In this document: in pieces, positions 20,151 through 54,212 of the stretch
Numbering within the stretch: the first letter of the stretch is position 1
Layout of the letters: the number at the start of each line of letters is the position of its first letter
Source of the DNA: Mizuhopecten yessoensis
Lineage: Eukaryota
NCBI RefSeq assembly: GCF_002113885.1
Contig: NW_018480057.1
Location: forward strand, 1,606-65,605
DNA: 64,000 bases
Reading direction: 5' to 3'
Program-made: the position numbers and the translations under genes
Notes under the pieces: model-generated
Seen by the model: only the letters and a program-made list of their open reading frames with translations
Database searches by the model: none
Told to the model about the DNA's origin: nothing

Positions 20151-21156
20151 ACGCCTCGGTTGTGATTTTGTTACAGCATCTTTTTTCTTTTTTTTCTTTT
20201 TTCTTTTTCTTCAAATATTTTATTCCTCCCCAGCTGAAATTACCCGATCTCGCTCAGTTACAGGTAAAAAAAATATTCTCGCACCTTTTAGTTCGAAAAG
20301 TATCCCGCCTTGGGCCTCAAATGATAATTACCTCTTTACTACTGAAGCTACATTTGAATGCTTCCGCGTAAAAAAGTAGTCGGTCCTTACTTAGATTACA
20401 ACGTATTTCACAGCGTAGATTATATTTTATCTACAACATCAAATATCTAATATCGGGGTGGATTCTATTTCCTGCTTATTACCTAAAACCCGTAAAAACA
20501 GCTGCTATTCTACTAAAGTTGGAAACTGTCCAAACATTTCACATTTGCATATGAAGCCCGGATGGCAATTGTTAGTGACGTCAATGACCCTGACTGCCCC
20601 CAAAACGTCATAAAATGACGTTACGAACAATAGTGTGACCCCGAAAAGTCACTATAATTCCCCCGCCAGTCTGCGCGTGTAAGCGATCTAGACCCGTGGG
20701 TCTGATAGAATTTCGGATATCTCTGTCTAGTATGCAAGAATACAGAATCTTAGCCCGAGGGTTTCTATGGCAAACAATAACCGTAGAAGATATTTTCCCA
20801 ATCTTATCAATAAAATGTTCCACAACTATGGATATTAGCCCTTTTCTATCATAAATATATGTTCGAAAACAACAGAAATCAGCATTTGGAATTTGGTATC
20901 TTTCCAAGTTTGCATATGTTTTCCCGTTGAAATCCTCCGTAACATACTTTGTTCCTGTAACGTCATTCTATTGTTAAGTTCGATTTAAGTATTACGCAAT
21001 GACGTAATGCTTACTATCATCGGGAATAACGTCAACGTACTTTGTTGCTGTAATGTCATTTTATTGTTAAGTTCGATTGAAGTATTACGTAATGACGTAA
21101 TGCTTACTATCATCGGGAATTACAGAGATTTTATATCACCGGGGATGACAGAGAAG
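20151..21156 (+). mobile_element. Non-autonomous Crypton-like hairpin element(s), left part deleted (paralog of 37945-39053)
   Basis: Right hairpin arm from ACGCCTCGG, TTCTCGCA after the hairpin, and the end motif GCGCGTG..GACCCGTGGGTC..TATGCAAGAA. Confidence 0.5.
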
Positions 21157-37507: not shown

Positions 37508-37944
37508 AAAAGGGTAATGGTTTCTTGCTTCTATGTAACTAGCAAAATTACTAAGGCACCAGCTTGAACGTTTCGGATTGTTATTGAAAACTCATTTTTT
37601 TTTATACTGGATGTGATGTATTTCGCAAATGACATATGAGTGAATTTAAACACTTATAAAAATATAATCAAATACATAAAAAGATAAAGTCAAAAAATAT
37701 GAAGATTAATTGATCATTTCTCTTATCTGTTTTTCTAACAATAGACCCGATTTCAAATGAAACCCCTGTTTAAACCGCTGGTTCCTTTTTATTTTAGAAT
37801 TAATGAGAGAAACCTCTGACATATGACGGAGAAATCTCACCCCGTGAAATGATTATCTTAATTGTCTAAACCTAAGATTGCTCCAACCCATGTGGCCGGG
37901 TGGCACAGGGATAGCACACTTGTCATTCACGTCTGGAAATTCAA

Positions 37945-39053
37945 GCCGAGGATTAGACTAATAACCTGTAACTGAGCGAGATTGGGTCATCTCAGTCTCG
38001 GGCTAAGATTCTGTAACATCCCAACATCGGCTTACGCCTCGGTTGTGATTTTGTTACAGAATCTTTTTTTCTTCAAATATTTTATTTCCCTCAGCCTTTT
38101 TTTTCATAAATATATGTATATACATATACTGCCTCCAACCAGATATATATACACATATATAAATATTTTGATAGTTGATGTTTGTTACAGACTGAACTCG
38201 ACTGAAATTACCCGATCTCGCTCAGTTACAGGTAATTGTTTTTTTTTCTCTCGCACCTTTTAGTTCGAAAAGTATCCCGCCTTGGGCCTCAAATGATAAT
38301 GACCTCTTTACTACTAAAGCTACATTACAATGCTTCCGCGTAAAAAAGTAGTCCGTCCTTACTTAGATTACAACGTATTTCACAGTGTGGATTATATTTT
38401 ATCTACAACATCAAAAATCTAATGTCGGGGTGGATTCTATTTCCTGCTTATTACCTAAAATCCGTAAAAACAGCTGCTATTCTACTAAAGTTGTAAACTG
38501 TCCAAACATTTAACATTTGCATATGAAGCCCGAATGGCAATTGTAAGTGACGTCAATGACCCTGCCTGACTCAAAACGTCATGAAATCACGTCACGAACA
38601 ATAGTGTGACCCGAAAGGTCACTAAAATTCCCCCACCATTCTGCGCGTGTAAGCGACCTAGACCCGTGGGTCGGATAGAATTTCGAATATCTCGGTCTAG
38701 TATGCGAGAATACAGAATCTCAGCCGGAGGGTTTCTTTGGCAAACAATAACCGTAGAAGATATTTTCCCAATCTTATCAATAAAATGTTCCACAACTATG
38801 GATATTAGCCATGAAGAGGATTCTTTTCCCCTTTTCTATCTTAAATATATGTTCGAAAACAACAGAAATCAGCATTTGGAATTTGGTATCTTTCAAAGTT
38901 TGCACATGTTTTCCCGTTGAAACCCCCCGTAACGTACTTTGTTGCTGTAACGTCATTCTATTGTTAAGTTCGATTGAAGTATTACGTAATGACGTAATGC
39001 TTACTATCATCGGGAATAACAGAGATTTTATATCACCGGGGATGACAGAGAAG
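37945..39053 (+). mobile_element. Non-autonomous Crypton-like hairpin element (37945-38710) plus an abutting related segment
   Basis: Long palindrome TAACCTGTAACTGAGCGAGAT...ATCTCGCTCAGTTACAGGTAA with apex TCGGCTTACGCCTC (38027-38040). Post-hairpin TCTCGCA is complementary to the end TGCGAGA (~38703). GCGCGTG + short palindrome before the end, as in the Crypton at 51720-54102. Confidence 0.55.
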
Positions 39054-39322
39054 TGTGGCCGGGTGGCACAGGGATAGCACACTTGTCATTCACGTCTGGA
39101 AATTCAAATTCCTTTTGTCCGGTATCCTACCACCCTAAGAACCTCTATGCGTTTTCATTCGGGGAATAATATTTATAATTGTCATAAAAGAAATAAAATT
39201 TATATTTTGTAACAGAGAAACCCGAGAAGGTAAAACTTGAGACACTTCTGTGATGGTGAAAGAGAAATAAGTTATCATTCAAAGCCAAGAAGATTTGTCC
39301 CGATGAACACAGTGCCGATGTA

Positions 39323-49250: not shown

Positions 49251-51081
49251 ATCGAAAGGAACCATATTAGGGTTTAAATCGGGGTAAACATATCCATAGA
49301 TCCAATTGAAAAAGACACAGTTTTTTTGTTAAGGACGTTTCATCTTTCATATTTATTTTCAAAACAGTAACATTTGTAGAGAATCATATGATGCCGTTGC
49401 TTGTAACTCATCGTTTTTAGCAGTATCCAAAAAGTATCGAGATATTTTAGATAGCAATAACGTAAAAAAACTCTGAAAAAAAGTATAGAAAAGTGATATT
49501 AATTATTGTATACGTCATGCCTACCAAAAGTCAATATAATGCTTAATAACCAATCTGTAAGCGATTGGATTTTACTTTGTGAACTTTGCACGTCTTTTTC
49601 ATAAATTCAAGGACAATCATATTTTCATTAAAAAATGTAAGTTTTGTATAAACACTTCCTATTAGATTAGATACAACTTTATACAACCCATTTTGATATA
49701 TAATGAAAACCTCAAGTTGATAACAAAATCATGGTGAACAATTCGGATTTAGTTGATAATCATCTAGTACATTCGTACAATGGGTTCAAAGCAAGATGGA
49801 CGGACATTCTTTTGTTAAAAAGCCTAGACAATATATTAAACAATAAAACTAACAATCTTTACATGGAGTCAATTATGCGTAGAACGTGATATTTATGGTT
49901 TAATATTTTATACACTGCATCACAAGTATCAGCATAACTTATATATATACAATTATACATTTTTTCTTACATAATGGAATAATATCACATACAAACTTTT
50001 AACCAAATCAGTGTCCACTATTGCTATACATGATATATGTACATTTAGCTCCCATGTCGAACAAAGTTAATCGAATTTTCTACTTAGAATAAGAGAAATG
50101 TTTATTTTGTGATATGATGTGAATGCCATGGCATGTTATGTGGGACAAATCGTTCAAAACATGGTTAGTTTCGCCTGTTTTTGAAGCTTTGGATGATAAC
50201 AAATGTTTACGTGTATTTGTGAATTTCAACATTTCTTTGAGATAAACTTGATAAAATATTAGCGTCAATTTAAAATAATTACACACTTAAAAACTGGACT
50301 CATATGTCAACATATAATCTGAGCTTGTTTATATACATATACAAAATAAATGTACACAAATTTTGAATTGCAAACAACAGTACTTTATGCCGCCTGATTC
50401 AGTTTATATTGATTCTACATGACTAGTCCCTTGGCCGGATGCGCATGATAGCCTCAGCAGATACGGACGAATAATCAATGTCAAACAACGTTTGATTCTT
50501 TTTCAAACCTCATTAAAAGCGAAGGTACAAATGATAAAAGTATCGACACCCCCAGGAGGATTGGATATCACACGGCTGTACTTCAACGGTGATTGATTGC
50601 AATCACACAGGTCATTAAAAAACAACATAGGGATATCACTTAATCGAAACACGTTACAAAGTCTAAATTAAGCGAGATTTTCCAAACAATGAGCGTCTTA
50701 TCTCGACACATTCTGTAGTAATCAGGATTTCCTGTCATATTCATTAAATGCGGCGATGTTATTGACTCTCTCGACTGCTATTTAATGCTTCGATGAAGCA
50801 TTCTCACAGTCCTTGTCATAATCTTTAGTTACAACTTAATGTTTGTTCCTTGTGTTTAGTTAGTTCCTGACAGAGATGATTTCATGTATTTCATAGGTAA
50901 CTATACTAACTATGTACTGTAATTGTATACGGGTTCGTGATGAATTTCGTTCTTGTTTTGGCGTCTCTTTAAATTTTATTGATAACTATTCGTTTCGACA
51001 TTAAATTACGATTGTATTTGTACTATCAATGATGTATGCCCTTCTGAACAGACATACAATATACTAAAGATTTTTTTTTAC

Positions 51082-51335: not shown

Positions 51336-51719
51336 GATAACGATTACGTGCTAATCGGCACGAGGCTGTCTCCCCCTAGGGGGTGACAAGCTGATCTTTC
51401 CCGGCTAAAACGGGAGACACACCTGTGAAGGGTAGGAGAATTCTGTTTATGTCTGTTCAGGAGGGCATACATCATTGCTAGTACAAATAAATCCTATTAT
51501 TTCAGTCACAACTCAGCAAACAATAATCTACAAAGATTGTAAACAAAAGCACATGTTGGGTATGAATATCGTCATTCACTTTTGATGACGTCACAATTAC
51601 CGATGACGCATTTTAATGACGTCACAATTGAACACGTGCTTATCGGCACGATGCTATCTCCCCCTAGGGGGTGACAAGCTGATCTTTCCCGGCTAAAACG
51701 GGAGACACACATGTGAAGG

Positions 51720-54102
51720 GTGGGATAATAATAGATTCTATCGCTACTGGTTGTGTAAGATAGAGAAATCTCAACCATCTGACTAAGATTTTTTGTCCAG
51801 AACGAGGCTTGCCGAGTTCTGGACAAAAAAAATCTTAGTCCGAGGGTTGAGATTTTTCTATCTTACACAACCAGTTGCGATTGATTATTTTTCTCCCATA
51901 TCTAACAGTATTTTAATGTGAAATAAAGGTAAACATGGACCCAAAACACATACAGGCAATTTGGCGTATTAATATCCATATCGGTACTACTTTCTCCCTA
52001 ACTTCATGTTGTCTGCTGAAACTGTGAAAGTACAACTTCTGTTGTTGACAACATCATGGAAAAAGTGTTTAAACTTGCAGACAGAGTCACAATAGGAGCA
52101 AATGGGTCAAAAGGGAAAATTGTGGACATTGTAAAACCTTTTGGAACTTATGTAATGTACAAAATTCAGCTGTTCCAGGATGGTAAAATAGTAACTGCTG
52201 CCAAACATGAACTTGTGAAAGGCATGCCAGATGAAGAGTTTGACTTTTTGTTTGATGAACCCATGCATATGGATGCAAGTGAGTCTGAATTCAGTACAAA
52301 TGAAAATGTGTGTGTGCCCCAACCACCTCTCATCCCCCAAACACCGACTGCTGTACGAGCCCCTCCAAAAACTGCCTCCTGTACTATGACAAGATTTGTG
52401 TCGGTCGATGATAACGAGGTTGACAAATTTGTTCACAACAATGAGAACAACAATACTAGAAAAAAAAACATTGTGTCACATGAAATTATTAAAAACACTT
52501 CTGTCTGAAAATGGAGAAATGAGGGAAACCCACAATATACCTCCGATGGAACTTGATACACATTTGTCCAAATTCATGATAGGCGTCCGGCAAAAAAATG
52601 GTAACAATTAACAACCAAGTGTTTTACGAGGGATGCTGGGGTCCTTTGAGCGATATCTCAAAAGACACAGGTATGGCACTAGTCTCGTCTCAGGATATGA
52701 ATTTTCCAAAACACGTGAAGTAATGCGGGCTAAACAAAAGGAGTTGAAAAGGCAGGGCATGGGTAACAAGCCTTTTGCAGCAGATGCCATCACTAACAGT
52801 GACATTGATTTGTTATACAAAACTAAACAACTGGGCTGTTCCACACCTGCATCGTTGATAAATACACTGTGGATGAACAACACTACACATTTCGGAATGA
52901 GAGGTGGTGGGGAAGAACACAGGGCACTGTGCTGGGGTGACATCCAACTCCATTATGACAATGACTTGTGTTTAGAATATATTGTTCATAACGAAAGGCA
53001 AACCAAAACACGCACAGGTAAAGACGCGAATAATACACGAAACGGTCAACCAAGAATGTATGAAACCCCCAACAACAAAGAACGGTGCCCTGTTACAGCG
53101 TATAAACAATACAGCGACAAACGTCCATCAACCTTTTCCGCACCCCAGCATCCATTTTATTTAGCGACGATTACTCATGTCAACAACCCTACCCTTAATG
53201 ATCAATGGTTTATTCGAGGACCCATCGGTCGCAACAAAATTGGTCAACTGTTAAAAACCATGGCAAAAAAGGCTGAACTTCCAGGGGTCGACGACAACAA
53301 ACGCCTAACAAATACCAGCGCACGTAAACATTTGTGTCAGACACTTTTGGAGAACGATATTCCCGACACACAAGCTGTCATGTTTACCGGACACAAAAAC
53401 ATTCAGTCACTGAACAATTATCGCGTCATTACGAACAAAAAACAGCACGAAATTTCGTCTTTGTTGACGAATGCATCAACGACAACAATTGCAGAATCGC
53501 ATTCACAATCGCTTACCACGTTTAGCTCGTCTGCCTCGAGCAACCGTCCCGCGATGGCGGCTGACAAAACTTCCAACGTGTCCACGTGTGCATCCTCGTT
53601 AGAGTCAATTTTCCACAATTCCAGCATTTACGGTGGAACATTCAATATACACGTCCATGATAATTCCAATGATGGAAACAAACAACATCCACGAGCTCGG
53701 AGGGCTATCATCTATAGCGACAGTGATGAAGAATGACTTTCATAACTTGACACATCTCTTCATCGTGTTTGTTGACAACGTAATGGCGTCAATCGACTTT
53801 CCGGCGAAAAACGAACTCTCGAACGAACATCACGTATTGAATAGACAAAGAAAGTTATTTACCGTTAAAAAATATTTTACTGTTAAATATATTAAGAAAT
53901 TGTTATTAAATTCATTAAAAATATTTTCCGTTTGTTAGAACTATTTTTTTATGCGGATTGTTACATTTGTTTACAGTGAAGTTCATTACAACATTCCAAT
54001 GACGTCACAGCGCGTGCAGGCTGTCTCAGCCCTAGGGCGGAGACAGATAAATCTAGCACCGGCAAAACGGGAGATAAATCTGTCAGGTGTGGGAGATTAA
54101 TA
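51720..54102 (+). mobile_element. Crypton (tyrosine-recombinase) DNA transposon
   Basis: YR-coding region flanked by imperfect 14-bp direct repeats GTGGGATAATAATA (51720-51733) / GTGGGAGATTAATA (54089-54102), with a ~180-bp palindrome at the left end (51721-51898). No TIR/TSD. Confidence 0.8.
52056..53736 (+). pseudogene. Crypton tyrosine recombinase (DUF3504 / ZMYM-KCTD1-related YR domain), two lesions
   Basis: NENNNTRKKT, LSKFMIGVRQKNG, PSVLRGMLGSFERYL, LKRQGMGNKP, HFGMRGGEEH, ERQTKTRTG, RCPV, PFYL, PIGRNKI, TNTSARK, TGHKN, SLNNY. Frameshift in the A-run at ~52460-52469 and TAA at 52609-52611; the 367-aa catalytic ORF 52633-53736 is open. Confidence 0.9.
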
Positions 54103-54212
54103 TAATCTTCCTCTACCTTAAGGGTGTGACAGAGAAATGTCCTACCCGAGGGGTGATTTGTTTGTTTGTCTTACCCGAGGCTCTGCCGAGGGTTAGACAA
54201 CCAATAAAAATC
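54103..54212 (+). mobile_element. Truncated left end of another Crypton-like element
   Basis: Hairpin TTGTCTTACCC-GAGGCTCTGCCGA-GGGTTAGACAA immediately after the Crypton right repeat. Confidence 0.55.

Follow-up and report, generated by a model that had tools for sequence, protein, structure and literature searches.

Near-palindromic hairpins with mirrored G·A mismatches at the left end of a CryptonA transposon lineage: a candidate folded recombination site

A decayed full-length copy of a 2.37-kb CryptonA DNA transposon, with a gene for a DUF3504-type tyrosine recombinase, occupies positions 51729..54096 (plus strand) of a 64,000-nucleotide (nt) stretch of the genome of the scallop Mizuhopecten yessoensis (contig NW_018480057.1). 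We refer to this stretch as the window, to which coordinates without a prefix belong, and to the transposon family as fam0. The assignment is based on copies elsewhere in the genome and on their mapped junctions. A BLAST search of the 988-Mb assembly with 51730-54100 returned seven copies spanning element positions 1-2367 at 95-97% identity, together with more than 35 short derivatives built of positions 1-234, a segment of ~77 bp and positions 2294-2367. These short non-coding derivatives are the most abundant copies and retain precisely a terminal hairpin and the right terminus, described below; in them the hairpin is invariably accompanied by a Crypton right terminus.

The recombinase gene (52056..53736, plus strand) is the sole long open reading frame (ORF) of the element and is broken in the window copy. 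The ORF at 52633-53736 matches DUF3504 at 3.5e-25 to 8e-25 and the C-terminal half of Phage_integrase at 5e-5 to 7e-5, the latter being below the Pfam cut-off; the corresponding match in a second scallop family, L062, reaches 3.7e-10 and lies above it. An earlier note, made from the letters of the window, had placed breaks near 52460 and 52609, and both are there: an A-run is one nucleotide longer near 52461, which shifts the frame, and a TAA at 52609-52611 reads TAT in other copies. An intact natural fam0 gene is found at L002:1830-3524, as an uninterrupted ORF of 565 amino acids (aa); the coordinates of a natural intact copy in the assembly are G000:C4656:734535-736921. Residues R288, K323, R429, H452 and Y461 are invariant across 15 homologues, a pattern that, as far as sequence goes, fits an active tyrosine recombinase, but Thr stands in place of the His of the HxxR motif. 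Sequence searches against solved structures, with the single protein and with a profile, returned QRICH1 as the only relative, so the catalytic residues could not be aligned to Cre or Xer in this way. Contigs from RNA sequencing runs (Logan) cover the element and its gene at low depth. Two other recombinase-like proteins were encountered. A match at G000:C5172:333089-333640 (61% identity over 186 aa) lies inside a 1912-aa open frame that could be a fusion or a domesticated gene, and P0035, a 439-aa Crypton-type protein with a source label of Gammaproteobacteria metagenome bin, is probably misbinned animal DNA.

The ends of fam0 were mapped from 25 left and 24 right junctions, all of them sharp. 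Copy homology begins exactly at the outer edge of the hairpin, where a crossover box (51729..51738, plus strand; TAATAGATTC here, consensus TAATAGAATC) is invariant at 25/25 left junctions. The 24 right junctions end at the right terminus (54080..54096, plus strand), a proposed recombinase-binding arm (RBE1) that itself ends in GTGGGAGA. For a related element we could compare an empty site with an occupied one. The empty site reads GAGAC|AAGG and the occupied site gains T-AATAGAATC ... GTGGGAGA-A, an exact insertion with no target-site duplication. From this comparison the element includes the T that precedes AATAG and the A that follows GGGAGA, and its limits therefore run from TAATAGAATC to GAGAA; in the window copy the final A reads T, at 54097.

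Across the mapped junctions the targets read G/T-A-N before the insertion point, resembling the 3' end of the terminus, and often A..A.AATC after it; on both sides of the crossover they look like the element's own junction (G/T-A-N | A..AATC). Numerous fam0 insertions directly follow a relative's terminus or are located at a terminus-like box inside a relative. The element prefers sites that resemble its own ends, especially the ends of relatives, and this preference leads to head-to-tail stacks. The junction spacer is the element's at 25/25 left junctions and the target's at 23/24 right junctions, though the two spacers differ. Head-to-tail junctions of fam0 with itself are present in the assembly, one exact and three with 1-2 mismatches. 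We also observed, at L019:1771-2003, two right ends from different Crypton families lying tail to tail, 6 bp apart, within a ~230-bp palindrome; there the ends of relatives serve as targets in either orientation.

The hairpin at the left end is a near-palindrome (51730..51891, plus strand) of ~160 nt overall, with 65-nt arms (51730-51794 and 51827-51891) that are 88% complementary and an inner 20-nt pair. Its apex (51803..51816, plus strand) consists of CGAG, GC, a TT loop, GC and CGAG, that is, a tandem G·A site and a mini-stem. A second mirrored site is represented by CGAG in the right arm (51841..51844, plus strand), its left-arm partner having decayed (51776-51781 reads CATCTG). Directly after the hairpin the right terminus (e.g. 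GTGTGGGAGA) recurs in inverted form from TCTCCCA onwards, as a subterminal copy with a T-run ahead of it (51888..51910, plus strand). Towards the far end a right-end module (54000..54046, plus strand) combines TGACGTCA at 54000-54007 with a 26-bp palindrome around CCCTAGGG at 54021-54046, and its blocks recur in the right ends of related families.

The apex was the subject of the earlier note, which had listed three occurrences in the window, at 51804-51815 and 54177-54189 on the plus strand and at 38027-38040 on the minus strand. All three are where it placed them, compared with 0.06 expected, and 0/100 shuffles reach three. The note took them for the centres of three long palindromes with unrelated stems. 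The palindromes are all real, but they are unequal: the one at 51730-51891 is complete; the one at 54098-54204 has only its left arm, its apex and ~12 nt of right arm before it is cut off at 54204; and the hairpin of the 38-kb unit (37960..38237, plus strand; fam14), which has outer arms of 38 nt and inner arms of 14 nt, carries an insertion of ~130 bp in its right arm (38070-38199). Their stems are not unrelated but diverged relatives with short blocks in common, left-arm identity between families averaging 0.36. The inverted copy of the terminus after the hairpin, which the note had also pointed out, is present in both units concerned (TCTCCCA at 51892-51898 with TGGGAGA at 54090-54096, and TCTCGCA at 38249-38255 with TGCGAGA at 38703-38709). 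In fam14 the polarity of the mismatches is reversed, the apex (38026-38041) lying on the minus strand, where it contains GCGTAAGC, and the element body running on the plus strand, as judged from its alignment with L050 and L039.

Across the genome the apex pattern has 3018 matches, compared with 482 for a reversed-pattern control, a 6-fold enrichment. In a sample of 30 apex loci, 20 centre ungapped palindromes of 9 to 75 bp (~23 by eye), and these palindromes belong to several diverged families. The near-palindromes are 130-190 nt long across families, and the predicted DNA folding energies of family representatives range from -45 to -98 kcal/mol on either strand.

All sampled families carry 5'-CGAG-3' on both arms, on the same strand and at mirrored positions. 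When the CGAG strand is folded these sites form tandem G·A/A·G mismatches flanked by C:G pairs, and the opposite strand forms T·C/C·T mismatches. A second mirrored CGAG site lies 17-30 nt further down from the apex, with a third in the oyster. The apex singled out in the earlier note is the innermost of two or three mirrored CGAG/CGAG sites, and L062 and a copy from Ruditapes carry such sites without the GGC/GCC apex. In 14 hairpin families, 19 of the 23 isolated 2x2 internal loops are C-GA-G opposite either C-GA-G or C-AA-G; we found no conserved single-base bulge in the hairpin families. The apex loops are TT, TTT, TCT, GAA, GTAA or GCA, flanked by G·A mismatches.

We measured covariation at the 16 stem positions closest to the apex, in an alignment of 13 families. 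The C-G-A-G columns of the apex are invariant or identical in 12/13 families. By contrast the stems change while staying paired: 92% of stem cells are paired against 59% after shuffling, and in 17/20 stem pairs both partners have changed. Covariation scores 0.85 against 0.20, a value of 0.85 being reached in 0/500 shuffles and controls slid along the alignment remaining at or below 0.22; arm complementarity is 0.89 within a family and 0.36 between families. Enrichment of the apex in palindromes and stem covariation around an invariant C-GA-G ... C-GA-G apex, both raised in the earlier note, were thus observed. At the second mirrored site of fam0, CGAG is present on both arms in 16/26 distinct copies, and the rest are partly converted or decayed; a one-arm conversion of CGAG to CTCG is seen in 4/26. 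Mutation pressure tends towards a perfect palindrome, and the mismatches nonetheless persist from bivalves to a hemichordate.

These parts combine into a module of constant order. Read on the G·A strand, the box TAATAGAATC is followed by a left arm particular to each family, mirrored CGAG sites (one or two) and the apex, in which a 2-bp stem with a T-rich or GNA/GNNA loop stands between two CGAG, and then by the right arm, a T-rich spacer, the inverted copy of the right terminus and the body with the recombinase gene; the right-end module and a terminus ending in GAGAA lie at the far end. The terminus and its inverted copy covary by family (TGGGAGA, GGTAAGAGA, TGCGAGA), and fam1/X, L061 and the 38-kb unit show this pairing of terminus and post-hairpin sequence too, in a version particular to each. 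The left arm also starts with a sequence resembling the inverted terminus. As a duplex, the junction consists of the terminus, a 9-bp spacer (A|TAATAGAA) and the inverted box, a conventional tyrosine-recombinase core, and the opposite end of the palindrome has a mirror-image core site with a T-rich spacer. When units are stacked, or an element is circular, the terminus meets the box, and the whole junction becomes a near-palindrome of ~200 bp whose crossover, GAGAA|TAATAG, lies close to its left base.

The same hairpin design adjoins recombinases that are 33-56% identical to that of fam0, in scallop, oyster, a hemichordate and two ENA contigs. The link between apex and Crypton recombinase genes suspected in the earlier note thus extends to three autonomous scallop families and four other organisms. 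The scallop L061 family (56% identity, 640-aa open frame) has the module at the end defined by the terminus. In L062 (41% identity, 506-aa open frame) the homology of ~40 copies stops at the outer edge of the hairpin, which has two CGAG pairs and lacks the GGC/GCC apex. In Saccostrea echinata and in the hemichordate Ptychodera flava, palindromes with the box TAATAGAATC lie beside homologous genes; the oyster hairpin has three mirrored CGAG pairs and an apex identical to the scallop's, and the hemichordate has two pairs and a mini-stem altered in a compensating way (GCC/GGC, with a GCA loop). The box is at the outer edge of the hairpin in most scallop families and at the oyster and hemichordate loci; the ends of the oyster and hemichordate elements, like those of the scallop family L063, are drawn from single copies. 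Two eukaryotic ENA contigs (proteins 33% and 41% identical) follow the same hairpin principle, and the copy from Ruditapes philippinarum has a decayed hairpin with CGAG sites. Its left arm (L067:5914-5970) is ~85% identical in DNA to that of L062 (L062:3440-3510), compared with 52% for the proteins, which would suggest either strong constraint on the arm or horizontal transfer. The hairpin is in the sense orientation relative to the gene in fam0 and antisense in seven other lineages, and its position at the end is constant. It is a conserved left-end cis-module of this Crypton lineage and not an accident of the locus. In the Crypton literature that we searched, no hairpin, stem-loop or palindrome is described, and the cis-element is apparently undescribed.

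Within the window, fam0 stands between related units. The right end of a related family abuts it head to tail (51632..51728, plus strand) and is the direct repeat D1, 93% identical to a second copy at 51344-51440. On the other side a third related unit starts (54097..54204, plus strand), with a box, TAATATAATC, at 54098-54107, a left-arm CGAG at 54147-54150 and an apex at 54176-54190; it is homologous to fam7, fam8, fam10 and fam11, and the contigs of other copies run beyond 54204 into the right arm that the window unit is missing. Further upstream, 51012-51055 and 51442-51490 are the arms of another long palindrome, without CGAG sites, and the ~386-bp interval between them ends in a Crypton-type right terminus (..GGGTAGGAGAA at 51440); the arrangement resembles the outcome of an insertion into a hairpin apex or next to one. 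The 38-kb unit is bracketed by a 54-nt direct repeat (37891-37944 and 39054-39107; 100% identical, 1163 bp spacing), which could be a local duplication or mark a composite unit. Its segment at 38427-38719 (also 20234-20830), of ~260-300 bp with TGACGTCA and the right terminus TGCGAGA, is very high-copy (1797 first-look candidates at 82-89% identity), and the hairpin part of the unit is rare.

We consider it very likely that the hairpin belongs integrally to the recombination site of a widespread CryptonA lineage and is under selection there. How it acts is a separate question. The best single reading is that it works folded, to which we give an even chance; that the active form is folded rather than duplex is an inference. 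The recombinase would bind on both sides of the 9-bp spacer, to the terminus and to the inverted box with which the hairpin starts. The palindrome would act folded, as a single-strand hairpin or a cruciform, a state in which the terminus would pair with its subterminal copy, while the apex mini-hairpin, together with the tandem sheared G·A sites, would nucleate and mark the structure. A single strand pair would then be exchanged and replication would complete the reaction, as in integron attC and CTX phage attP(+). The full scheme for the animal Crypton lineage, joining an extruded hairpin or cruciform, recognition through sheared G·A pairs and a mini-hairpin, exchange of one strand pair at GAGAA|TAATAG and finishing by replication, is put forward tentatively, and we think it rather unlikely to hold in every part.

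Several features of the site point towards folding. The CGAG mismatches are invariably mirrored, purine-purine on one strand and set in a C_G context, in which tandem sheared G·A pairs are known to be stable. Their persistence across phyla, against the mutation pressure noted above, counts on the same side. Two of the apex variants, read on the G·A strand, are GCGAAGC and GCGTAAGC, and their complements are not such motifs; as single-strand DNA both form extraordinarily stable mini-hairpins, with melting temperatures of 76.5 and 71.5 °C (PMC13037366). The hemichordate apex has a C-GCA-G loop, and GNA loops have been described (PMC3201870). The sharp junctions of one type would be the product of a single-strand exchange finished by replication, as proposed here, whereas a two-step exchange with an overlap of 6-8 bp would be expected to give both junction types, unlike the one type observed.

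Other observations weigh against folding. One alternative is that fam0 recombines as ordinary double-stranded DNA at a core made of the terminus, the TAATAGAA spacer and the inverted box. Here the palindrome would amount to two mirror core-like sites with accessory arms, comparable to the arm or accessory regions of lambda attP or cer/psi, the CGAG sites would be directional duplex binding sites for the N-terminal region of the recombinase or a host factor, and the arms would be kept alike by copying. We think this somewhat improbable, yet it is the alternative we take most seriously. With a duplex core present, folding is not needed to explain integration; the geometry of box, spacer and box is legible in several families, and the targets resemble the core on both sides of the crossover. 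Arm complementarity can be maintained by arm-to-arm copying with no selection for folding, and copying between the arms is evident from the one-arm conversions; the arm common to scallop L062 and Ruditapes is conserved in sequence and not in pairing alone. Among the Logan contigs we saw no fam0 circle joint, the one large joint that goes back belonging to neighbouring repeat families and not to fam0. A CGAG hairpin was also not found in the 3.5-4 kb flanks of homologues in Pecten maximus, Paramuricea and Mya, nor in one 5.2-kb stretch of L063, a scallop family of 37% identity; these hairpin-free loci may be decayed, domesticated or of a different lineage.

The two strands of the hairpin provide further points on the same side. 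Nearest-neighbour energies differ by 0-4.5 kcal/mol between the strands, too similar for us to use top versus bottom as a discriminator. The box combined with a G·A-strand apex has 474 genome matches, with none for its control, and the box combined with the complementary apex has 75, most of which belong to a family that has the box on either side. Genuine "flop" copies, their flanks unchanged, nonetheless occur in fam0 (L052), fam1, fam7/8 and the L061 type, at ~5%, and fam14 (37960-38237) is flop throughout, so strand polarity can invert. We had considered polarity as proof of a single-strand substrate (~10 families against one, and 474 against 75), and give it little weight since flop copies and fam14 still propagate, as the duplex alternative would have it. 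With polarity not fixed, a duplex, or a cruciform with hairpins on both strands, fits better than a strict one-strand substrate. In L052 (G000:C107:728455-731466) the flanks are normal and all asymmetric positions of the hairpin are inverted, both CGAG pairs and the loop included; in a few copies, such as C798:349839, the apex alone is inverted. These flip and flop forms suggest arm-to-arm exchange at variable points. Inversion by the recombinase between the mirror core sites was rejected as their source, both spacers of L052 being unchanged, and exchange within the stems fits better.

What a purely duplex site accommodates poorly is the form of the conserved sequence. All lineages share no more than 4 bp, CGAG, a short stretch for duplex recognition; the sites are always mirrored as a fold needs rather than freely placed; it is on one strand only that the apex loops correspond to known single-strand mini-hairpins; and sharp junctions with unlike spacers are unusual for two-step duplex exchange. 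The hairpin might instead serve another stage, as an origin or priming site of a circular or single-stranded intermediate (compare the single-strand origins of rolling-circle plasmids and phage G4), or as a transcript terminator, stability element or small-RNA precursor. Mini-hairpins of the GCGAAGC type have been reported at single-strand phage replication and priming origins (PMC13037366), the hairpin lies directly 3' of the gene in 7/8 lineages, and there is the low-depth coverage of the element in RNA contigs. A fixed role in mRNA is unlikely, however, with the fam0 gene inverted relative to the hairpin, and the variable orientation of the hairpin with respect to the gene, at a constant end position, argues against an RNA role in general. 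The commonest copies, short and non-coding, keep precisely the hairpin and the terminus, the crossover is at the edge of the hairpin, and Rfam yields only generic, sub-threshold matches to miRNA precursors: in release 15 no match reached the gathering score, the best being MIR2670 at 50.9 bits against 117, and all were of the generic long-hairpin kind. On this balance we regard a role at another stage as improbable. Far less probable still is coincidence, in which an unrelated foldback element or miniature inverted-repeat transposable element (MITE) lies beside Crypton copies and the apex is shared by chance or composition. The genome is indeed rich in foldback repeats, and some palindromes near recombinase homologues have no CGAG (L063), but in every fam0 copy, as in the other autonomous families and the other phyla, the hairpin occupies one and the same place at the element's end, homology stops at its outer edge with no target duplication, and chance would have to produce both the 6-fold apex enrichment and the 474 box-plus-apex matches against none in the control. 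A foldback or MITE identity for the hairpin itself was likewise rejected, there being no duplication and the hairpin always occurring with the Crypton right terminus in short copies. A target of a telomere resolvase (protelomerase) was discarded too, as the centre of the palindrome is asymmetric and lacks an exact dyad.

Comparison with described systems places the element among the CryptonA transposons (Goodwin 2003; Kojima & Jurka 2011, PMC3212892), with which it shares a single DUF3504 tyrosine recombinase gene and no reverse transcriptase, the absence of target-site duplication, an excess of non-autonomous over autonomous copies and a slight target microhomology. The 2011 survey gives animal Cryptons as having no terminal repeats (PMC3212892), whereas fam0 has a subterminal near-palindrome and an inverted copy of its terminus. 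It differs from the CryptonA description in its sharply defined ends, the 130-190-nt near-palindrome with mirrored G·A sites, the crossover box and the inverted terminus. By its protein and its mode of insertion fam0 is filed as a Crypton, and the features of its ends are a difference in description and not in kind.

The integron attC site, for which recombination of the folded bottom strand by IntI is established (PMC8876359), is likewise an imperfect palindrome with its crossover near one base, is split between the ends of the unit, conserves structure above sequence and is associated with head-to-tail arrays and sharp junctions. The differences are that the host here is eukaryotic, the recombinase is of the DUF3504 type and not IntI, and the palindrome is longer; that each Crypton unit bears its own recombinase or is a short derivative; and that folding is an established property of attC and our proposal for the Crypton site. 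The attC likeness drawn in the earlier note also stops short of the irregularities, which here are symmetric tandem G·A loops, 2x2 and made of purines, in place of the extrahelical bases and unpaired central spacer of attC. CTX phage attP(+), a substrate of XerCD, is said in work by Val et al. from 2005 to form a forked hairpin and to undergo a one-strand exchange that is finished by replication. As in attP(+), two inverted core-like sites ~100-150 nt apart could pair into one site with an imperfectly paired spacer; the enzyme and the host differ, and here a usable duplex core is also present. We know of no single-stranded stage in Crypton elements. The hairpin termini of parvoviruses and poxviruses exist in flip and flop forms, and the left hairpin of minute virus of mice (MVM) has a GA/GAA "bubble". 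The likeness lies in imperfect hairpins, asymmetric positions found in two inverted forms and a purine-purine bubble. The viral hairpins, however, are the ends of linear genomes, are processed by HUH nickases or resolvases and occur at ~50:50, whereas the Crypton palindrome is chromosomal, has a ratio of flip to flop of ~95:5 and goes with a tyrosine recombinase.

Cryptons are, to our knowledge, the least understood class of eukaryotic DNA transposons, and we know of none whose transposition has been reconstituted. The vertebrate regulators ZMYM2-4, QRICH1 and KCTD1 owe their DUF3504 domain to Cryptons. Exact ends with a crossover box, a target rule, natural intact recombinase genes and a structured cis-element found across phyla now make biochemistry feasible, and poorly understood elements gain a defined, testable recombination site. 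If the hairpin does act folded, this would be the first eukaryotic tyrosine-recombinase system with a folded DNA substrate, and would show mini-hairpins and tandem G·A mismatches serving naturally as recognition marks. It would be a eukaryotic counterpart of attC recombination in integrons and of CTX-phage integration, and would explain the cassette-like head-to-tail stacks. Even if the site works as a duplex, the hairpin still offers a convenient mark by which Cryptons in animal genomes can be found and their limits drawn.

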